DNA from: Mytilus californianus | Taxonomy: Eukaryota | NCBI RefSeq assembly: GCF_021869535.1 | Contig: NW_026262690.1 | Coordinates: 24,800,001 to 24,864,000 of the forward strand | Reading direction: 5' to 3' | Length of the DNA: 64,000 nt | Shown: one piece after another, positions 3,277 to 61,600 of the stretch | How the letters are laid out: every line of letters starts with the position of its first letter | Position numbering within the stretch: position 1 is the stretch's first letter | Made by a program: the position numbers and the translations under genes | The notes under the pieces: generated by a model | The model's input: the letters and a program-made list of their open reading frames with translations, nothing else | What the model was told of the DNA's origin: nothing | Databases searched by the model: none

Positions 3277-3802
3277 TGATTTGTTTGTTACTGATCATAT
3301 ACCACTTTTTGGGTCTTTGAGAAATAAAAACTTAAAAAATGAAACTTGGATAATGATCTGAGTGAAACTGTCGACTATAAGTCTTTGATTGGTGGTTCAT
3401 TGTGACAAACCTATCTTTCAGTAACAACACATATTGCAGCAATAAATCTGATACTATTAAATGTTTAATAAGTATCTAATGAGATTGTTGTCGTATCATG
3501 AACTTCTATCCATATCCCCTCGCATCATGTTGTACCATCTTCATTTAACAGCAATAACAACAGGAAATAGTTTCAGAATTAACATACCTTTATATTTTGT
3601 TTCAAGTCAATTATTTGGTGGTAGATTATAGAATTGTATAATCATGGTTTATAGACGAGTTGATTATTCCCAGCTGTTAAATGGTGCTGATGACTTTTCT
3701 TAACCCGTTTCTGCATAACCCGTTACTCGACATTAAATATCGGTTAAGAGGTCACAAAACATATAGGTTAGATAAAGTTGCGTGCTTGCAGTTTAATAAG
3801 AA

Positions 3803-7927: not shown

Positions 7928-10900
7928 TTATATTATAGTCAACTTCGATTTTATTGACAGGAGAACTGCATGGTTGCTTTATATGTATATTTTGTTTCTT
8001 TTGTTTACCTTATTATTGTGTTATTCGTTGACTTATTGAAGGTGATCCCGGGGGATTCCTCATTCTAAATACTTGGGGTCACTCAGACTCATCTGATTTC
8101 TCATCACTATTTCGTCAGAGTTTCTTGGCACCTTTTCAAATATTTCACTTATCATTCATAATTTTCATTCATTTTCCAAGCATTTTTCATTTAACATCTC
8201 CAACCTCAACTCAACACCTTAAAACATTGTAGCCCACCGTCACGCGGGGGCTGGTCCACTGCCACGCATGGGCCGTCAGATGAAGCTTCGCTTTGTCATT
8301 CTTTTGTCAGTTGTGTTGTTCAAGTTGAGTGTAGTGGCTTGTCAGCTGGTGTACTTTCCACGAAAGAATCGCTTCCTGACAAAGTCCTGGAGCAAAATTA
8401 TTCGTCAGATAGTTGAGTGATTTCCCAAGGCCAAACAATTTAATATGTTTTATATATTTAGTACAGAAAATACGTTTTCATTTTATTTAGTGTAATATTC
8501 ATAATAAATATATTACATTTACACCGTATTGTTAGTATCAATGGTTCCGTGACAAAGTTATTATTGAATCTACAGTCTGCTAACACTACACTAAGATAAC
8601 ATTCACCAGACAGGAACCTTTAACAAATTTGACCTTAAGATTTGTAACAGATGTTAAAGTTTTAAAACAGTGACGCTAATAAGCATATCGACACAGAATA
8701 ATTTCGCAGATTGATGTCCTGCGAAGATTCTCATACTAACTGATTGATTGATAATGGGAATAAAATAATTATTACAGAGACTGCAATGTCAAATTCCTCA
8801 CAAATCATATTGTGCTATTACACGTGTATAGCAAACTGCATAACATGAGACTTATGGTTTAATCGCCATTGAAACCAGCATCACAGTTTGAATACAACCT
8901 TTAATATTAAATTTTATATGATTTCACTTCGACTATTGAACTATATTTAGATAAACAAGATTATCATGTGGAAAACTGGCGTCATTTTCAGATATAAATT
9001 TATCGATTGATTAATTGGATTGGATGCTTACATGGTTGATTGGTTGTTGGTGTAGTTTCAGTGGCAAATATTTCATGCATATACACGACGGGAAAAACAT
9101 AAAATATATTTTGAAACAGAATTTCGACTATCAGTTTTACACAAACACACACTGGAAAAACGAATATATAAACTAACAGCCTAACTGGTGCATAAGTGAT
9201 CGCTGTGTCATGTTGTAAAAATGTGTGAAATTGTGAATTTTAGCATTTTCTTCTTTCTACATCGTATTTGGTATCAAAAGTCATTATTTCTTATGAGTAA
9301 TTAAGTTTTAATATTTTAATTAAGCAATAAATGCATTTTGTTCGGGAAACAAGATTTTGAACTATTTTCAAATAATTTTATAAAAGACATTTATTAGTCG
9401 TGTTGGCGTTACTAGGAAATATTTATGGATTAAGATTGGGATTATGTCGTGAGAATACTTTTTGACAACAATGGTCATCAATGTTATTTATTTGTCAACA
9501 CCCAAACTGTATATATATAGAGTGAATAATGTCAATTAACACTAAGTCTTAATTTAAAATGCTTTAAATTTTATATATTTCATTGTTTGGAAACTATTTG
9601 TTTATTAGTACCTTTTTCTATTTTCATTGATCAAAACGTTTCTATGATCATGTTTTATAAAGGTTAATTTCGAAACGAAAAGGTGGCAGAGAAAAAAAGA
9701 GAGAACCATGTGACGCACCGGTTCGCTCCGCTCCCGATCTGCGAGCAGCGGCGGGTTAATGTAGGTTGCCATGATTACTGTTTTGTAAATATGTTTTATG
9801 AACTGACTGTATATATGTTGGATGGAAAAATAAAGTATATGAACGTTCATGTATCCAGTCTCATGTATTGATTTACAATAACTTCTCGGTATATGGAACC
9901 GTTGTCATCAGAAATTGGAATAAGTTTGTTGGATTGTAAAACACTGTTATTTATCTCTGATGGAATGGATTTACCAAAAACGAAACACACAAACGAACCA
10001 AACACCAAATTATAATCAACTATTTTAATTACGCCAAACAACGATTTTCTAAACACGTCAGCTGCAACCAAAATGGAAACGGAACGTGTTGTGACAAGTA
10101 TTTATCTCTGAAGATAATGCCCAACAACATGAATCTAACTTTCTAAATCTAGGTTAACCATTGGTGTCATATGCTTGTTGAAAATATTTGGTATATATAA
10201 TTCCACCGTTTACAAGAAATGTGGAACATGCAGTAGATATTTTGTCTGTCCAATGTTATTTCATTGCGACTGTCCTAGATTTTTACAACACAGTTGTATA
10301 ATTATAAGTTAGGTTTCTTTCAAAGCGATTTCTGTATTTAAATTTAGCAGGAACGCAAAGTTAAGCCGAATAGTTTTAACAGTTGTTATTATGACTATCA
10401 GAAGTCCATTACTAGGTCTTACTAGGTACTACGTCTGTTACTATTAAATTCATACAATCTATAAATCAAAACAATATTGTGCTCGTTTTGACATCATAGA
10501 AAACCGCTAAAATAGGATAGATATAAGTGCTTCCCCATAACACACAATCTTGAATAACAACGTACTATTCATCTTATTGTATAAGTTAATTGGTTCAAGT
10601 GTTTTCTAATCAACCGGAACATTCACAAGTGTTTTATCGTGTTCTGACACACGACCATTCTTGTATCAAGTTTGATTTAGAAATGCAGCTGACCGAATTA
10701 ATGTATTCTTTAACAAAATGAATGTATAAGGATGGTGTTTTAAAATTGTAATTCAAAGCATAACAAATGAATAACATATTTTCACTCGGAGAAAGCGGCT
10801 ATGCGTAACTTTAGATTTTAAGATGTAAGAATAATTATTTTCCTCCAGTGGTCCGTTATAAAAAGATTTTAACAAGAAACTCCGATACATGTACTTGTGT

Positions 10901-10934: not shown

Positions 10935-11290
10935 AATGTTCTTATGTTGTGCTGTTACTCCACTGTCCCAGGTTATGTGGGAGGGTTGGGCGCTCGAAAA
11001 CAGGTTTAATCCCGCCGCTTTATGTTTCTGTCTGTCCCAAGTCAGGAACCTGTAATGCAGTGGGTGTCGTTTGTTGTTCAATGTTGTGTATCATTTTTTT
11101 TTTTTTTTTTTGTGTATTGATTTTTTACATAAATCAGAACGTTAGTTTTCTTGTTTGCATTGTTTACATTTGTCATGTCGGGGTCTTTTATAGCTTGCTA
11201 TCCATATGGGTGACCCATAGTTGCTAACTTCAACGTAACTTGATCTTTGGTGGAAAGCTCATTGGCAATCATACCACAGTTCCTTATTTT
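10935..11290 (+). repeat. Dispersed repeat family B (twister-bearing, fixed 3' end TCATTGGCAATCATACCACA...)
   Basis: Similar by eye to 45195-45680, 1436-1725, 49140-49315 and 51760-51960. Short 3' pieces at about 13285, 43765 and 61020. Confidence 0.8.
10960..11063 (+). ncRNA. Type-P5 twister ribozyme copy (family B), P3 degenerate
   Basis: P5 CAGGU/ACCUG plus outer CCACUG/CAGUGG; GAGGG 10981-10985; UAA 11007-11009; CGCC; P4 UCUG/CAGG with loop UCCCAAGU. Confidence 0.7.
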
Positions 11291-25099: not shown

Positions 25100-25209
25100 G
25101 GAGTAAGTTTGACACAAAAACTTACGACTAAGATTGATCGTAAGTATACTGAATTGTTCATGACTTACGACCAATCTTAGTCGTAAGTTTTTTTTGAGAA
25201 ACCGACTCC
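25100..25209. mobile_element. Palindromic MITE-like element
   Basis: ~46-bp inverted arms (GGAGT...AAAAACTTACGACTAAGATTGATCGTAAGT) around a short spacer. Confidence 0.7.
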
Positions 25210-26736: not shown

Positions 26737-27663
26737 GTAAGATAATGCAAAGCTAGTGTGTATAATACATAAAAGTGATGACAGGAATGACAAAAAAACC
26801 GCACAGTACAACAGACCACATCAGCCATCAACACCTGAATCCTCCAAAAAATCCAACAGACATACAAACAACAACGGACATCCATGGTTCAAGTAGCCTT
26901 ACTTAGTACAGGCACAAACTATGGTGGGATTAAACAAGTTTTACGTGCGAAAAAATCTCCCCCTGTGTCAATTCAGACCATATGTCGAAAAAAAAACATA
27001 CAAAAAAACGACACCGTGCAGTTACTAATAGGATGACCACTATCAAGAACAAGGAAATAAAAAATATAATTTGTAAAGCAGGGTCAAAATGTACTCGTCA
27101 ATTAGGAGGCTAGCAAATTCAGCAACAGCTGTAAGTTAGATATTGCCGCTCAAGAAAAAACAAAATGAAAATGAAAGAAATTTTGCTTCGAAGGACATTG
27201 CTTAGTAAAATCACTTCATTTGTATCTGAACAATACGTAGATCACATGCATGATATTACATGAAGAGTTTTGTTAAGAATGTCTCTTTTATTTATTTTTT
27301 TTTGGAAAAAGTATTCAAAATTTGTCAACACCATCAAAATTGTTACCTGACAGTTGCATGATAAATAGTTCCAAACCCGAGGTCGATTTATTTCCAGCGT
27401 AGTATTTAGCGTTTTTTGTGCTGGCATGACACATCATTCATACGTTATTTTTCTATACATTTACTGTTTATACAATGCTAAAATTGTTCGAAACAGTATA
27501 GTTTTTATACCTCCTAGCAAAGATAGCTTTAGCCAGATTTATTTTTTTTTATCTTCAATGCTCTTCAACTTCGTTATTGATTTTGTTTCTGTAAATCAAC
27601 TGTTCAGCTAACACCACCGATGAATCTTGTATTGATAAATCGAGTCTGTTGTGCAATATATAA

Positions 27664-37396: not shown

Positions 37397-39300
37397 ATGG
37401 TGAGTTACATAACAAGACAAAGAGGCTCTGAAAATGTTAATCAAAATATACAGAATAAAATAATTATGTCAAAGTCAAAGAGGGTGCTCCATTTCATTCA
37501 TCGAATACAATTACAAAAAGAACTGCTCAATGTTTAAAGATAAGTGAAAGTTTTATCAACAAATTAATTAATAGGACAGGAGAAAATCAAGATTCAAATT
37601 CAAAAATTGCAGCCAGAAAGGATACGCTTGACCAGTTTGACAAAGATTTGATAAAAAACTACTGTTCATAAGTTATTTCGAAAAAAATGAATGTGTTTTT
37701 AGGTACTGATGCTGTTTATCATATTAATTACGTGTTATAGTGTTTATTTAATTTGTCTTTGTATACTTTTAACCTTCACTGTTTAGTCCATTTTTGGTAA
37801 TATCCTTTTGGTGTGGCTCGGTTTTTATACACCCGCAATTGTATTATTATGCTATGGTCATTTTTTGTATTCTTGTCTTTCATTTTTTCTTATGTATTTT
37901 GTCTAAAGAGTATCTATATGCCATTTTGTTTTTCTTTGTTGAAATAGTTATTATGTTTTTAGTGATTAAGATTATAACACAATTTTGACTGCTGTACCCT
38001 AATTTTTGACATTTCTACCTAATATGTCTGTTTGTTTTGTTCACACATTGTTGTCAATATAATGGAATTCTATGCGACTGTGAGAGGTTTAGCTAGCTAT
38101 AAAACAAGATGTAATCCACCATTTTCTACAGAAGGAAATGCCTGTACCAAGTCAGGAATATGACAGTTGTTTTGCGTTCGTTTGATGTGTTTGAGCTTTT
38201 GATTTTGCCATCTGATCAAGGACTCTCCGTTTTGAATTTTCCTTGGAGTTCGGTATTTTTGTTAATTTACTTTTTATCTTAAAAAAACCGAAAACATATT
38301 TTGGAGAAAGACCATGATATTGTTTTATCTAAATGCAAGCTATGGAAAACCTTACATTGATTAGGATTCATATATAAAAATGTTGCTAAAAAAGAAAAGA
38401 TCTTGTTGAAAAAAAAGACATCATAAATCAATGTTTCCAATTTTAAAAACAATTAAGAAAAAACGTGAAGAAGGTTACACACCTATTTGTTTGGATGATA
38501 CATGGGTGGACACCAATCATACTACATCACATCAATGGACCAGTTCTGAAGAGTCGAAAAATAGATAAAAATCTCTAGGTAAAGGACAGAGATTTGTTGT
38601 GTTACATGCAGGTTATGATAATTTTTTGTAAACGGATGCGATTTACTTTTTAAGGGTAAGAGCACATAAATGAATGGTAAAATATTTGAACAATAGGTTG
38701 AGAAACAATTAGTTGCCGCTTTGCCACCAAAAAGTATTATAGTCATGGACAATCCATCATACCACAGTATCCGTGTTGAGGAAACAAAACCTTCAACATC
38801 TAACTCGAGAAAAGACGATATGAAGGGTATTTTAAATAAATTTGGTTTCGGATTTGACAGCAAGTTTACAGAACCAAATTTATACCAAATAGTTAAATCT
38901 AAGAAAATTGACCCTGTATTTAAGGTAGATGAATTCCTCAAAAAGAAAGAACATGAAGTACTTAGACTCCCCCTTACCATTGTGATTTAAACCAAATTGA
39001 ACTTATATGGTGTGATATGAAGGGAAAATTGGTCAGGCAAATTCAACTTTTAAACGTAATGATGTTAAATCACTTATCCATAAAGGATTTAACAAATTGA
39101 TAGTGTTATGTGATTAAAATCTTGTGATCATGTTAACAAAAATTATTGAACCGAGATATTGGCAAAATGATGCAATCCAGGAGGGAATTTAAAAAATTGC
39201 TATACACATTCAATCTGATTCTGAATCGGAGAGTGAAAAAGATAATTCTAATGATGGAGATGAGACTGAAGATCATGAATGGCCATTAAAATATATTTGA
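37397..39300 (+). pseudogene. DDE transposase pseudogene (Sailor/DD82E-like), interrupted by a repeat insertion at about 37700-38277
   Basis: HTH-like KRTAQCLKISE; LGFIYK; CLDDTW (D at 38494); GKGQRFVVLHAG; SIIVMDN (D at 38748); VLRLP-YHCDLNQIELIW (E at 38999); acidic tail. Many stops and frameshifts. Confidence 0.85.
38078..38166 (+). ncRNA. Type-P5 twister ribozyme copy (family C), P5 shortened by deletion
   Basis: GAGGU 38084-38088, UAAUCCACC, P3 AUUUUC/GGAAAU, P4 CCUG/CAGG with loop UACCAAGU. Confidence 0.65.
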
Positions 39301-40039: not shown

Positions 40040-40415
40040 ATTTGACGTATGTCTTTTTGTGCTTCTTTGTTACATTTGTTTGTTTTTATAGTGAATAAGA
40101 TGATAACACAATGTTGACTGCTGTACCCCTATTTTTGACATTTTTACCTATTGTGTCTGTTTGTTTTGTTCACGCATCGTTGTCAATATAATGGAATTTG
40201 ATGCGACTGTCATACAAGTGAGAGGTTTAGCTAGCTATAAAACCAGGTTCAATCCACCCTTTTCTACATAAGAAAATGCCTGTACCAAGTCAGGAATATG
40301 ACATTTGTTATCCATTCGTTTGATGTGTTTGAGCTTTTGATTTTGCCATTTGATAAGGGACTTTCCTTTTTGAATTTTCCTCGGAGTTCAGTATTTTTGT
40401 GATTTTACTTTTTTC
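40040..40415 (+). repeat. Dispersed repeat family C (twister-bearing)
   Basis: Closely similar to 37950-38277; a 3' half lies on the minus strand at about 2870-3020. Confidence 0.85.
40208..40303 (+). ncRNA. Type-P5 twister ribozyme (family C), core apparently intact
   Basis: P5 UGUCAUA/UAUGACA; P2 UC/GA; G40222-A-G-G-U; scissile C40250-A40251; T2 A-U and C-G; P3 6 bp; P4 CCUG/CAGG; T1 ACC/GGU. Confidence 0.75.
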
Positions 40416-45332: not shown

Positions 45333-45433
45333 CCACTGTCCCAGCTTAGGGGAGGGGTGGTACAAGCAAGCCTGTTTAACCCCGTCACATTCTATATGTG
45401 CCTGTCCCAAGTCAGGAGCTCGTAAATCAGTGG
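45333..45433 (+). ncRNA. Type-P5 twister ribozyme (family B), near intact
   Basis: P2 CCC/GGG; G45352-A-GGGG; UAA 45377-45379; P3 ACAU/AUGU; P4 CCUG/CAGG; T1 UCCC/GGGG; outer CCACUG/CAGUGG. One C-to-U change in T2. Confidence 0.75.
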
Positions 45434-55253: not shown

Positions 55254-58200
55254 ATGAAAGCTTAGAAATGGAAAAATATTAAATACTAAACTCGTTCAAA
55301 GGGTATCTACACGTCTCAATCTTCAAAATCACTTATCTAAAAATACTACCATCGCTAACATTTTAACAATAAAAATCGTGGTTACCCTTCTATCGATAAG
55401 TGTCATGCCAAAAAATGACTTACATGTCCCCGTCTTTCCACCAACAATACGGTAAGGTCTACGTTTAATGGTCGCACATTTTCTTTAAATTTTGAAACTG
55501 ATATAACTTGAAAAACAAACAGTATTATTTATTTACTCACATGAAACAAACCGGGATGCGGTATTCAGTACGTAGGTGAAACTGGACGATATTTTTCTAA
55601 ACGCACGCAAGAACACCTGTATCGTTTTAAAAGACCCAATAAATTCAAAAGTATCGTTTATCAACATCTTAAAAAGCACAATCATCCTATTAAATATTTA
55701 ACAGTTCAACCTTTAGAAGTAGTAGATAAGCAGCCTGGTGAATCTCATTCAAATTTTGTAGGATCACGGAAAATAATTGAATTAAATTGGATTAAAAAAT
55801 TACAGACAGTCCACCCTCTCGGCCTTAATGATAATATCATGGGAATTGGTAATATATCAAGAACCGATTCTGTTAACATTTTGGATATAGTTTCTAAAAC
55901 TTTTCGTAAAAACCGTTCTCATGGGCGTAGAAAAAATCGCAATCAAAGAAAATTTCGGACCAATCATACAAATTTTGTCGGACCTTATTTCTATTTCAAA
56001 AAACAACGGCAGACATTATCTATTAACCCAGCTCTGTTCTTTACCTATAAATAAATTAAATAAAATTTTAGAGGGTTGCAACACAATTTCATATTGCAGT
56101 CCTAAGTATGAAATCGTTCAAATTATAATGGCATATTGTTATAATAAACTGTTTCCCAAAATTGATCGCCCTGAAGATCATAAAAAACATTTTATTAAAA
56201 TAAAGTATGTCAATAAAGGTTTTGATTTTGTAAATATTGCCGGTATTTTAACGACCATTCTGTTAAAGAACAAATTCCTGGATATTTTGATTATACTGAA
56301 CTCCCTCTTATTTGTTATATTTACAAGAAATGTACCCGAAAATTTGTGTTTAATTATAACCAAGTCTGTAAAGATGTAAATATCAGTGAAAATACATCTA
56401 CGTCATGTAATTGTAGTAGTTCCGAAATACACTTATGGCCTCATTTCCCATGTTATAACAGGAGACCTTAACATCGTTCGCGACCGAGAGTTAAAATCGT
56501 TCCTCAGTAAAGAACCTAAATATCGTCCCCCGTCAATTATTAATTGGAATGAGTGTCGTAATATCATCCACGACTCACTTCGTGCTTACTGTTTGAAATG
56601 AATAAAACGGGAAAAAGCTGACAAAAAATCTTTGGACTCTTTTTTTAATTCAGTAATGAAGATAGTTGATATACGTATACAACATTTTAAAGAACATTTT
56701 ACTCTTAACAACAACCATAAAAATCCTATTTCTCGTACCAAACATAAACTAATAGAACTAGCCAAGGAATTTGTTTTTGTCCCGGCTGATAAAGCTGCTA
56801 ATAATATCATTATAGTTTGACGTAAATTTTACATTGAGGTTCTGCAAAAGGAAATCACAAATTCACCAACATTCCAACTGACTTCATTTTCAGAAAACGA
56901 TATCTGTAACAAACATAAACTATTAGCTACTTCTTTACAAGCAGAACCAAAAACAATGAAAGTCCCAACTATGTACTGACTTCCGAAGCTACACAAATCA
57001 CCTTACAAATATAGATTTATTTCGTCTTCAAGTCATTGTTCCACTACTAAATTGTCTATTTTACTTACTAGTACACTTGGTACAATCAAAAACCTGATAA
57101 CAAATTGTTCTAATAAGGCCTTTGAAAATAGTGGAATTAATTACTTTTGGAGTGTCAAAAATTCGTTGGAAGTACTTGATAAATTGCATGCATATATTGG
57201 TGATTTTGAATCTGTTCAAAGTTTTGATTTTTCTACCCTATATACCACTTTGCCTCATATTCTTATTAAGAAAAAATTCACACACCTAATTAAATGGGCA
57301 TTTGAAAAGTCGGAATGCGAATACATATGTTCAAACTCTTTTAGGTCATTTTTTAGTAGCAACAAACAAAAGAACTATGTCAATTGGACATGCTTTGATA
57401 CTATATCTGCCCTTGAATTTTTACTTGATAACATTTTTGTTCGCTTTGGAGATTCCGTATATCGTCAAGTTATCGGAATTCCAATGGGGACTAACTGTGC
57501 ACCACTTATTGCGGACCTATTTTTGTATTGTTATGAGTTACAATTCATGACTAAAATCAGCAAAGACCCATCGAAACAACATCTTATACAAAAATTTTAT
57601 AATATTTTTAGATATTTGGATGATATATTGGCTCTCAATAATGACGACTTCAGTGTGTATACTAAAGACATTTATCCTGTTGAACTTACTTTAAATAAAG
57701 CTAATACTAACAATGACCACTGTCCTTTCCTCGATCTTGATATCTATATCATTAACGGGAAGCTTAATACAAAAATTTATGATAAAAGAGATGATTTTTC
57801 ATTTCCTATCGTTAATTATCCATTTTTAGATGGTGACGTTCCCTTGTCACCATCTTATGGTGTTTATATATCTCAACTTGTACGATTCGCTCGTGTATGT
57901 AACAACGTATTAGATTTTAGCGAGAGAAATTTATGTATTACTGAAAAATTATTACACCAGGGTTTTCGATATCATAAACTAGTCAAAACATTTACTAAAT
58001 TTTATCATCGGTATAAGGACATCATTCGTAAATATAACTCAACATGCAGACATCTTATACGTTCGGGTATTTCACATCCATGGTAATATTCCTTACAGAG
58101 CACAAAAATAGCAGTATTCACAGCAAAAGCTAACAAAACCTTTAAACAGACTTATTAAGAAGGGATATAGTTACGATACTGTTGTCAGGTCATTAAAGAT

Positions 58201-58255
58201 TGCATATTTTGGCTTTAATATTCATTCACTTATAGGGTCTTTGCATCGGAATTAA
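55254..58255 (+). pseudogene. Naiad EN-RT ORF (putative selenoprotein), disrupted by about six frameshifts
   Basis: MKLRNGK start; IIYLLT*NKPGCGIQYVGETGR...KRTQEH; ELNWIKKLQTVHPLGLN; CNC at 56406-56414; HVITGDL; DKAANN; PKLHK; SFDFSTLYT; GIPMGTNCAP; RYLDD; FLDL; VYISQLVRFAR. TGA at 55416, 55509, 55542, 56599, 56818 and 56977; TAG at 58109. Confidence 0.9.
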
Positions 58256-58304
58256 CACATTTATTCTAAAACCAGTTGTTGGCATGACACGGGTTATGTT
58301 CTTC

Positions 58305-58371
58305 TCATATATTTTATGACGGTATAATACTGAACCCATAACAGGAGGGATTGTGCCTGATATTTATATGA
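58305..58371 (+). promoter_or_regulatory. SECIS element (form-2-like)
   Basis: Helix I UCAUAUA/UAUAUGA; core AUGAC (58316-58320) opposite UGAU (58358-58361); helix II GGUAUAAU/AUUGUGCC; apical AA (58333-58334); small apical CC/GG pairing. Confidence 0.75.
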
Positions 58372-58566
58372 TGAAGACATAATCTTTCAATCAGTTTAAT
58401 TGAGGTCTGGAGCTGACATGTCAGTAACTGCTAGTAGTCTGTTGTTATTTATGTATTATTGTCATTTTGTTTATTTTCTTTTGTTTTCTATTCTGACATC
58501 GGACTCGGACTTCTCTTATACTGAGTTTTACTGTGCGTACTGTTGTGCGTTTGTTTTTTCTACATT

Positions 58567-58657
58567 GGCTAGAGGTATAGAGGAGGGTTGAGATCTCAAA
58601 AAACATGTTTAACCCAGCCGCATTTTTGCGCCTGTCCCAAGTCAGGAGCCTCTGGCC
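58567..58657 (+). ncRNA. Type-P5 twister ribozyme in the Naiad 3' region
   Basis: P5 10 bp GGCUAGAGGU/GCCUCUGGCC; GAGGG 58583-58587; U58610-A58611 scissile; P3 GCA/UGC; P4 CCUG/CAGG; loop UCCCAAGU; T1 and T2 pairings possible. Confidence 0.8.
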
Positions 58658-61600
58658 TTTGTTAGTCTTGTATCATTTTTAATTTTAGTTTCCTGTGTAT
58701 AATTTGGAGTTAAGTATGACGTCCATTATCACTGAACTAGTATACTTATTTGTTTAGGGGCCAGCTGAAGGACGCCTCCGGGTGCGGGAGTTTATCGCTG
58801 CATTGAAGACCCATTGGTGGCCTTCGGCTGTTGTCTGCTCTATGGTCGGGTTGTTGTCTCTTTGACACATTCCCTATTTCCATTCTCAATTTTATATATA
58901 CTAAAATAAGTCCTCTATACAGGAATTTTTTTTTACATTTATTACAATTTCATATAATCGACAAAAAATATGTCATTCATTAAAAACATTGCCTCCTATT
59001 AAACTCTTGTGTTTTAAGTTTACTGAACTTGACCTATAAAACCCAAAACAGAACCATGGAGGATGTGCAAAATAAGTGAAATGATAGGCATGTTTGTTTA
59101 CCTTTCCTTTTATCATGGGTTTCCCTCGCACTTGCGTTGTGCGGTTTCGGAAGTACTAACGAGAGGACTCGTGATTAAGGTCTGCATTCGAAAAAACTAT
59201 CGGTGAATTAGAGTACGAGAAGACAATAATTCAATGGCAGTACATTTCAGAAGATTTTAATACGCTAAATGATTTTCTTTTAAAAGACAGTCTATGTACA
59301 GGTGTTTTACAGTAAAACTTAGTCATTCAATATATAAAACATATCGATCAACTTTTTTTTTTAACTTAAAGTATCATATGTGAATTTAATATATACTTAT
59401 ATATATATACAGTTATATACATTCATGATCCAACAATCTGTTGATACTTTTAGCATCGCACTAGGTCATGATTTTTATGACTGCGTATAATGCATTTACA
59501 CTACATGGATGTGTACTGATTCATAGTTTTGTCTGAGAAACATAATTTTTCAATTGGTTGAAATTGGCTTTGAACTTGTTTTCAGTAGGTGCGAGTACTC
59601 TCAAAAAGGTACTTTGTGTTTTCGTCTTTTTGTTATGCTTTGTGCAGATCTGATGAGTAACTCCTTTTAAGCTCATTTTTCTGTACAGTTTGTTCTGATG
59701 TTGTAACCACTATCCAAGGTTAGGTGAGGGTCGTTAGATATATCTTTTACTTGACGCCAACCAACCGACTATCGATTATAATCGGCTACAAATTTATTTG
59801 GAGGTTTATCTTTCATTGTCAACAACTTAACACATTTTTATAGGATTTCTAAGGTGCTTTAGAGCTTATAATATGTTTAGTGTAAACATTAATTAAAATC
59901 AAGTTTTTAAAAGTTAAATAATGTACACAATTTGTATAAATATATAGTAAAACTATTAAATAATATTCTCCGGAAACAAGCTGTTAACTTATTTTAATCC
60001 GTTTCTTAATAACATTTTGAATACATGCTGAAGAAGAGAGGCAAAAGATACCAAAGGGACATTCAAACTCATAAGCCGAAAATAAACTGACAACGCCATG
60101 GCTAAAAAAGAAAAGACCAACAGACAAACAATAGTACACAAAACACAACATAGAAAACTAAATACTGAGAAAAACGAACCCCACCAAAAACTGCTCCACA
60201 TGCGACACCCGTCGTGTTACTCCTATAAGATAAGTAACAAGTGATATGGTATCATAAAATAACGGATTGGTAATTAACTCTTATCTAACCCCAAAACATC
60301 ACCAAATTAATAAACCATCGGTAAAGTAAATGTTCTGACCCTGAAGCTTGACCGACTGTGAAAATGTGAAATAGAAACAGGTTTGTCATGACAAAGGATA
60401 GACGAGACTGTTACCGGAATAAACAACACAAAAATTGAAAAATTAAAAACGAAAAAGTACAAGACTTAAACTCAAGTAAGTGCAAAACGAACCACTTTAA
60501 AACAAAACTAGAGGTGTTCTCCGGTTCTCCGGAAGGGTAAGCAGATCCTGCTCCACATGTGTCACCCGTCGTGTTGCAACAAAACCGGCAATAAATCTGA
60601 ATCGGTAGGTATATATTAAGCGATTCTGCATGTATCTACTGCAGCCATTTGAGGTGGAACCAAAAATATTAAGGCATTTTTATTTATTTTAATAACTTAT
60701 TAGTTAAAACTGATTATAGGTGATTATGAAATTTATCAATCGATTATTTAGTTGGCTGTCTCAAATTATTGAAATATCACTAGTATTAAATTTTGAAAGC
60801 GCTAACAAAAATGTTTAATCCCGCCACATTCCTTATATGTCTGTCCCATGTCTGGGGTCTGTAATTCAACAGTCGTCTTAGCTTGCTATCTGTCATATTT
60901 GTTGTTGTCTTTTTAAGGATAAATCAAACCGATGTTTTTCGAATTTGAATTGTTTTACATTTAGATGAAAGGCGTATGGTTACCTATCATAGATGTTTAT
61001 ATCCTAGTATTTTGGTCTCAGGTGGATAGTTGTCTCATTGGCAATCATGTATCTCCTCATGTTTCATTTTGTTAAATTGTAGCAATCCAGCAGAAAACAG
61101 CCAATTAAATCTTTACACTTCTTACATAATATTGATAATGAGAAATGAAGATAAAAATATATTGGAATTATGAAGCAAACTTTATTTAATAAGGAAAAAG
61201 ATATACAAAATTAAATTAGATCGTAATTTAACAGAATGATTACTATAATTCCCTCATTTTGCGACCATCCAATACTGCAATGGAGTAAGGGGTTGTCTCT
61301 CCTCTTCCAGATTGCTCAGTTTTTGGTATTGAAAGGCAACAATAACTTATATTCTTTATTCTGCAATAGTGATTTATAAAATTTATGTTTATTTGCTTTT
61401 TTTAGTTATGAATCAGGGATGGGGTATTCATATTATACGAAAACGTGTACTTCTCTGGCAAGGGCACATACATTAGACTTAAAACGTAATTATGCATACA
61501 TCTAATAAAAAATGTGTCTTGTATTTAAATATTTGCATCAACCGACAATTTATTTGTACTCAATATTGGTATTTCATTGAAATACTTTGAACACTTATTA

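Follow-up and report, generated by a model that had tools for sequence, protein, structure and literature searches.

The window analysed here is a stretch of 64,000 nucleotides from Mytilus californianus (contig NW_026262690.1, positions 24,800,001 to 24,864,000 of the forward strand), and all coordinates given without a locus name count from its first letter. Towards its right-hand end lies a decayed copy of a Naiad (Table 1), a Penelope-like retrotransposon of a kind that is among the most abundant in marine invertebrates. A single alignment joins window 55258-58895 to positions 35-3680 of L010, a copy of the same family, at 93.6% identity. The reading frame runs from about 55254 to a TAA at 58084-58086 and contains the Penelope-like reverse transcriptase (RT) motifs together with the Naiad hallmark PADKA. 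Pfam returned no domain for the pieces of the window ORF, so the identification as a Naiad rests on motifs. The published markers are a GIY-YIG part N-terminal to the RT, a CxC motif in the linker and DKA in place of DKG (PMC8557442). L010 has an N-terminal GIY-YIG (IIYLLT(U)...YVGETGRYLSKRTQEH, with U at cysteine positions), a CxC motif (SCNCS) and DKA in PADKAANNIIIV(U)RKFY, and the DKA is found at the same place in the window copy.

The window ORF is dead: an extra A stands at its start, there is a TAA at 56377, and TGG is changed to TGA at 56599 and 56977. These two TGAs resemble selenocysteine (Sec) codons; at both positions, however, intact same-family members read TGG (Trp), and the TGAs reflect decay, not recoding. 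Among the three TGAs in the RT half of the window copy, only the one at 56818 is a conserved Sec codon; the other conserved Sec codons are located N-terminally, in the zinc-finger/GIY-YIG part. Where loci with an RT identity of 54% or more were checked, nearly all had TGA as their sole in-frame stop at the recurring positions. Downstream of the frame lies a SECIS, with SECIS_1 scores in relatives of 30.9 bits (L010, same family) and 38.8 bits (L045). An earlier note on this DNA had described a Sec-recoded EN-RT with a SECIS. That description holds for the SECIS, which is present although below the Rfam cut-off in this copy, and for the conserved codon at 56818, but not for 56599 and 56977.

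Beyond 58895 the element-specific read depth is zero, and the loose ends in the flanking sequence are varied and AT-rich, in agreement with the preference for (TA)n targets that has been reported for Naiads (PMC8557442). Between the window copy and five loci with RT identities of 65-83%, the 3′ UTRs can be aligned block by block: the SECIS, a second block, a twister-like motif and a long tail. The motif begins 197 nt past the SECIS, and its last position is 238 nt short of the 3′ terminus of the element. The second block (UCUGGAGCUGGCAUGUCAGUAACUGCUAGUAGUC, window 58400-58450) is placed between SECIS and motif in all aligned Naiads (L002-L007).

Table 1. Features of the decayed Naiad copy, parts of its predicted twister core, and further twister cores in the window.
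Feature	Position	Strand	Basis or remark
Decayed Naiad (Penelope-like) copy	55254-58895	+	93.6% identity to L010, frame, read depth
SECIS	58306-58370	+	Rfam SECIS_1 full length, 22.9 bits (cut-off 35)
P5 5′ strand GGCUAGAGGU	58567-58576	+	pairs with 58648-57: 10 bp including two G.U
AUA spacer	after P5 5′ strand, before P2 3′ strand	+	sequence
P2 3′ strand, AGAG in the register of the family	58579-58582	+	GGGG in intact same-family copies
GAGGG: conserved G58583-A, then T1 strand GGG (58585-87)	58583-58587	+	G and A invariant across the alignment of copies
Palindrome 1, UUGAGAUCUCAA	58588-58599	+	occupies the position of the P1 3′ strand
Palindrome 2, AAACAUGUUU, preceded by a single A between the palindromes	58601-58610	+	ends at U58610, 5′ of the predicted scissile bond 58610/58611
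A-A, P2 5′ strand CCCA (58613-16), GC T2 strand (58617-18), C58619	58611-58619	+	CCCC in intact copies
P3 hairpin CGCA-UUUU-UGCG	58619-58630	+	double changes at all four P3 pairs
P4 CCUG/CAGG (58631-34 with 58643-46), loop UCCCAAGU (58635-42), then conserved A58647	58631-58647	+	sequence, covariation
P5 3′ strand GCCUCUGGCC	58648-58657	+	pairs with 58567-76
Conserved Naiad 3′ tail	58658-58895	+	aligns with L002 and L003 tails, partly with L004, L005 and L007
Twister core, another truncated Naiad tail	10977-11047	+	R1 62.6 bits
Degenerate twister core	26896-26961	-	R2 52.1 bits
Twister core, third family, T1 GGU/ACC; sister copy at 40218-40295	38080-38157	+	R2 54.3 and 52.8 bits
Twister core of another family in a 5′-truncated Naiad tail	45348-45417	+	R1 67.8 bits

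Type-P5 twister ribozymes were reportedly described by Roth et al. in 2014. In the window, every conserved twister element can be read in the type-P5 order between 58567 and 58657 on the + strand. The earlier note had placed the permuted elements at these same positions, and re-reading recovered all of them: T1 (58585-87 with 58636-38) and the pair C58619-G58630 can form, as can T2 (58617-18 with 58641-42), which includes one G.U, a feature of the family to which the window copy belongs. The P4 loop thus contains one strand of T1 (58636-38) and one of T2 (58641-42). Once permuted so that P5 is the open helix, a published table of twister elements matches the window in order and in conserved letters (PMC8501958). 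These core letters (UAA, GC(C), the loop UCCCAAG(C), the A after P4, an A-rich L2 and GAGGG) are all present and are invariant or nearly so across copies. The stretch 58567-58657 also folds better than its shuffles (z = -3.2); the nested fold of minimum energy contains a GGGUU/AACCC pairing with which T1 and P2 compete. Two details needed correction. P2 had been described with one mismatch among three pairs and has in fact two bad pairs of four (AGAG/CCCA), and what had been described in place of P1 as a small hairpin plus AACAUGUU is a run of two loopless palindromes, 58588-99 and 58601-10.

The window copy differs in P2 from its closest relatives. L010, L011 and L012, which belong to the same family (95-96% RT identity), have GGGG/CCCC at this helix, and among the RNA and DNA reads of this stretch G predominates at 58581 and C at 58616. 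The window copy is thus weakened, and the other copies of its family are intact. Because P2 is weakened and the element is dead, this ribozyme copy is probably inactive, and natural intact copies are used for comparison throughout.

At gathering cut-offs, Rfam found neither a twister nor a hammerhead in the whole window or in 40 related loci. The lack of hammerheads agrees with the report that Naiads do not carry them (PMC8557442), which the earlier note had also stated. A scan of the whole window at an E-value threshold likewise gave no twister match. The Infernal check with twister-P5 that had been proposed therefore came out below the cut-off (37.6 bits for Twister-P5, RF02684) throughout the window and the 40 loci. 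Only when a stretch of about 120 nt is given does the alignment cover the full model, at 58586-58646 with a shifted register (17.4 bits, E = 0.084) and at the copy at 45349-45416 with the right one (20 bits, E = 0.019). The intact same-family copy L010 has no Rfam twister match even at E up to 10. By the criterion of Rfam, the window motif is a non-member. The alignments trace these sub-threshold scores to 22-25 nt that replace P1 and to the insertion of P3. A strict descriptor of the core letters, in which P2, P4 and T1 are required to pair, matched 17 times in the 359 kb of window plus loci, compared to 0.2 times in dinucleotide shuffles. Standard Rfam annotation would then overlook a twister variant of which each genome has thousands of copies. 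Elsewhere in the window, 25100-25209 (+) gave a sub-threshold full-length match to the plant MIR1319 family (37.5 bits against a cut-off of 116.6), probably a repeat hairpin.

The motif is tied to Naiad 3′ UTRs well beyond the window family. Thirty-six loci have an RT identity of 54% or more and a flank of 600 nt or longer; in 34 of them, two covariance models (R1, built from 14 cores, and the broader R2) place the motif on the coding strand at +314 to +1053, counted from where the RT match ends. Two genome contigs at 49% RT identity (L090, L091) carry it as well, as do five loci at 41-46% (L061, L066, L072, L075, L076); in-frame stops are absent from the two of these that were checked, L072 and L075. 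On this distribution (i.e. the motif in loci at 41-46% RT identity without in-frame stops), the twister predates the switch to selenocysteine. R1 and R2 gave no motif in about nine loci that have enough flank and 37-46% RT identity, and these may lack it or be too diverged. That the motif lies in the 3′ end of a Naiad, as the earlier note had it, is borne out by the UTR alignment on both of its sides, the linkage by R1/R2 and the stop of read depth at 58895.

The motif is found without an ORF as well. Several short repeats in the window carry it (10977, 45348, 1416 and others); the sequence downstream of them matches the Naiad tail of L005, and they can be read as ordinary 5′-truncated Naiads. 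In L004, a second, degenerate and inverted twister (8744-8812, -) lies 2.3 kb downstream of the Naiad ORF and fits the inverted truncated insertions of Penelope-like elements. L075, one of the loci without in-frame stops, has its twister about 2.4 kb upstream of the RT (35-112) with none detected downstream. The same locus has a 105-nt direct repeat (191-295 / 3625-3728) with copies 3434 nt apart, a geometry unlike a simple pseudo-LTR.

The absence of covariation among copies had been named in advance as a refuting result, and the opposite was found. Over 36 distinct cores, 91.6% of alignment cells hold standard pairs, compared to 73.0% when partners are shuffled (none of 500 shuffles reached 91.6%) and 37-48% when the strands are slid; since the copies are related, such cell counts overstate the number of independent events, whereas the distinct pair types per position do not. 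Both sides have changed in 20 of the 27 pairs, and the double changes include all P2 pairs, all P3 pairs and two P4 pairs. P2 occurs as GGGG/CCCC, GGGA/UCCC, GGGU/ACCC, GGGC/GCCC and GUGU/ACAC. T1, T2 and the centres of the palindromes were absent from the model that made the alignment, and their counts are therefore unfitted. T1 pairs in 89% of cells and T2 in 97%, with pair types GC, AU, UA and GU for T1 and AU, GU, CG and GC for T2. The T1 variants are GGG/CCC, UGG/CCA, AGG/CCU, GGU/ACC and AGA/UCU, and the outer pair of T2 is found as G-C, G.U, A-U or C-G. In the open helix P5, unrelated sequences form a duplex in each lineage (median z = -4.2 over 33 flank pairs, up to 25 bp). P2, P3, P4, P5 and both pseudoknots thus covary, and this, together with the conserved nucleotides, backs the assignment to type-P5 twisters made in the earlier note.

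One clade deviates in a regular manner. In the second-clade loci L022, L027, L028, L029, L034, L035 and L037, a mismatch recurs at the second P2 pair (U.C or A.C), the third T1 pair is U.U, and T2 is CC/GG. The A.C mismatch in P2 of the window copy falls at the same position. That many second-clade copies combine one P2 mismatch with the U.U in T1 has to be counted against the ribozyme reading. The G.U pair in T2 of the window family, the Rfam scores short of their cut-offs, the missing cis P1 and the roughly nine loci without a motif count against it too.

A P1 helix formed in cis was sought by eye and by folding, and only the GGGUU/AACCC pairing mentioned above turned up. In its place, every lineage has two loopless self-complementary stretches between GAGGG and the predicted cleavage site. 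Palindrome 1 is 8-12 nt long and perfect in about 30 of 36 copies, occurs as at least 18 different sequences (with centres GAUC, GGCC, GCGC, GUAC, CAUG, AGCU, CUAG and UGCA), and has complementary central pairs in 33 of 35 copies. Palindrome 2 is AAAC-NN-GUUU (with centre AU, UA, CG or none) or AAACGUUU, and its final U directly precedes the predicted scissile bond. In L091 it has the centre UGCA, and in L090 it is AAGGUGCUUU, a sequence that needs G.U pairs to be self-complementary; this need for G.U points to pairing of RNA and not to a DNA site. Together, the two palindromes average 14.6 nt, compared to 5.2 nt in shuffled spacers.

A loopless palindrome cannot fold on itself, and a hairpin loop needs no self-complementarity. 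For this reason the palindromes suggest that two copies pair with each other. RNAcofold predicts a dimer 7.6-16.5 kcal/mol more stable than two monomers, domain-swapped and hinged on palindrome 1, a prediction that is limited to nested pairs and speaks for feasibility rather than proof. The hammerheads of Penelope-like elements offer a precedent: a palindromic loop closes their stem III, and cleavage is proposed to take place in dimers, with the tandem layout as an aid (PMC6765202). P1 is, moreover, reportedly dispensable for weak cleavage by twisters (PMC8501958). The palindromes suggest a cleavage that depends on dimers or tandems, as in the Penelope hammerheads. A stronger version would make the Naiad twisters obligate sensors of dimers or tandems, the first natural twisters with an intermolecular palindromic P1, which arose apart from the dimeric Penelope hammerheads. 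We put this version forward tentatively and rate it somewhat short of an even chance.

Tandem copies, which such a cleavage could use, occur in the same family. Three records of the same family (L010, L011 and L012) are circular permutations of one unit, and the first 145 nt of L010 recur at its end with a period of 4031 nt. At the junction, the 3′ end of one unit adjoins a 385-nt 5′ UTR, followed by the ATG of the next unit. From this circular permutation of three contigs, same-family Naiads are present in the source DNA as head-to-tail tandems, or possibly as circles. The window copy starts at the ORF ATG, without the 5′ UTR of the tandem unit, and an upstream pseudo-LTR twister was not found in it.

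The mechanism that we propose builds on this arrangement. Intact copies would cleave between the U and A equivalent to 58610/58611. A transcript across a tandem or pseudo-LTR junction would carry two twisters one unit apart, and two cuts would free a unit-length RNA with the order twister 3′ half, tail, 5′ UTR, ORF, SECIS and twister 5′ half. The ends of this RNA would be a 5′-OH and a 2′,3′-cyclic phosphate, which could be re-joined. The palindromes would make cleavage depend on the pairing of two ribozyme copies, either on two RNAs or in two tandem copies. This unit-release role is the one proposed for the hammerheads of canonical Penelope-like elements.

RNA ends bear on this proposal in a limited manner. 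In three raw RNA-seq runs, depth is continuous over 58610/58611 with no pile-up of ends, a weak test given that both strands are read and that most reads probably come from thousands of dead copies. The data argue weakly against efficient constitutive cleavage of bulk RNA, as read-through of dead copies is likely. Integrated copies end at 58895, hence the 3′ end of the insertion is not set by the twister, a point counted against the ribozyme reading. The earlier claim that the twister defines the RNA ends of the element fails for insertions and finds no RNA-seq ends at 58610; at most, it could hold for the ends of a unit-length RNA. There is also a single suggestive case of a switch near the predicted site. 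At 3274-3100 (-), a 3′ UTR fragment of the same family follows the window Naiad copy until 2 nt beyond the predicted site (…AUGUAUAA), and at 3100-2940 (-) it switches to the twister region of the other Naiad family that is also found at 38080. Either a template switch to the end of a cleaved RNA or a nested insertion could account for this.

Altogether, we consider it likely that window 58567-58657 is a decayed self-cleaving ribozyme of the type-P5 twister class and an integral, conserved module of the Naiad 3′ UTR. The same fold could also be kept as a structural RNA that does not cleave, serving, for example, as a handle for the RT to recognise its own 3′ UTR or as a site of dimer linkage. 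The continuous RNA-seq depth at 58610/58611, the missing cis P1 and the P2 and T1 mismatches recurring in one clade would suit this role, and palindromes alone would suit dimer linkage. We nevertheless find it unlikely. Down to about 41% RT identity, the nucleotides important to catalysis rather than to folding are unchanged: the G and A that open GAGGG, the A-A that follows the scissile bond and the A downstream of P4, with U, or sometimes C, on the 5′ side of the bond. Twisters with a degenerate P1, moreover, cleave in Schistosoma (PMC8501958). Alternatively, the ribozyme could be a selfish passenger in Naiad tails or in non-autonomous derivatives, of no service to the element. Craig et al. 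raised this idea for hammerheads (PMC8557442), some Naiad-like loci have no detectable motif, and short tail fragments with the motif are its commonest form in the window. Yet its position and strand relative to the ORF are fixed from 96% down to about 41% RT identity, it appears to diverge with the element, and the short copies resemble ordinary 5′-truncated Naiads with tails matching L005; a passenger is thus, to our mind, a distinctly unlikely explanation.

Less credible still is that this ORF copy merely abuts a different repeat, either a SINE-like one or an RTE-type element with the motif at its 5′ end, as in Schistosoma Perere-3. Twister variants do occur at the 5′ end of Perere-3 (PMC8501958, PMC7761336), and a self-BLAST of the window gives mosaic matches around the motif. 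On the other hand, conserved Naiad UTR flanks the motif on alignment of six loci, the single 3.6-kb match to L010 runs through it, it is of type P5 and not a 5′-terminal type P1, and no RTE-type endonuclease/RT gene lies downstream. We rejected this candidate as very improbable. Chance resemblance to a twister, which the Rfam scores under the cut-off might suggest, is so improbable as to be negligible in view of the covariation over 36 cores, the P5 duplexes (median z = -4.2) and the descriptor counts (17 against 0.2).

The reading as a self-cleaving Naiad module has consequences for how these elements are understood. Naiads were described as devoid of the ribozyme characteristic of other Penelope-like elements with an endonuclease (PMC8557442), which left open whether ribozymes matter to the element. 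If a ribozyme of another class sits in the same place, with a palindrome for its closing stem, self-cleavage is probably a required step for Penelope-like elements and not a passenger. The model offered for this step is the cutting of tandem transcripts dependent on two copies. The motif also adds a natural twister without a cis P1. Should obligate dimer or tandem sensing be true, the Penelope-like life cycle would need a ribozyme that fires only on multimeric RNA and releases unit-length, possibly circular, intermediates. Our literature search, which ran mostly outside subscription papers (e.g. Roth et al. 2014), returned no twister in Penelope-like elements and no dimeric twister, though individual mollusc twisters may have been listed before. 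A 2026 preprint on animal retrozymes and Penelope-like elements makes no mention of twister.

Compared to known systems, the Naiad motif represents, as far as its sequence tells, a known class of ribozyme in a variant form, and its host element is new. With the type-P5 twister (RF02684) it shares P5, P2′, GAGGG, the position of P1, UAA, P2, GC, an optional P3, the P4 loop UCCCAAG and the A that follows, as well as the two pseudoknots and the predicted U-A cleavage. It differs in having two loopless palindromes instead of a cis P1, a P3 and a long P5 that are always present, and a last T2 pair that is G.U, A-U or C-G and not G-C; all copies stay below the Rfam cut-off, and the host is the UTR of a eukaryotic retrotransposon. 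The T-variants of the Schistosoma mansoni RTE element Perere-3 (PMC8501958) are likewise twister cores used by a retrotransposon, with a P1 that is dispensable or degenerate. These, however, are of type P1 and sit at the extreme 5′ end of the element, where half of P1 comes from the target-site duplication, whereas the Naiad motif, of type P5, is an internal part of the 3′ UTR, some 240-280 nt short of the 3′ end, in another class of retroelement. The minimal type-I hammerheads that canonical Penelope-like elements carry in their pseudo-LTRs (Cervera and de la Pena 2014; Lunse et al. 2017, reviewed in PMC6765202) have in common with it the host class, a position in the pseudo-LTR near the 3′ end, the tandems and a palindrome for the closing stem that points to a dimer. 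They differ from it in ribozyme class, the Naiad motif being a twister, and in their one palindromic loop where the Naiad motif has two palindromes.
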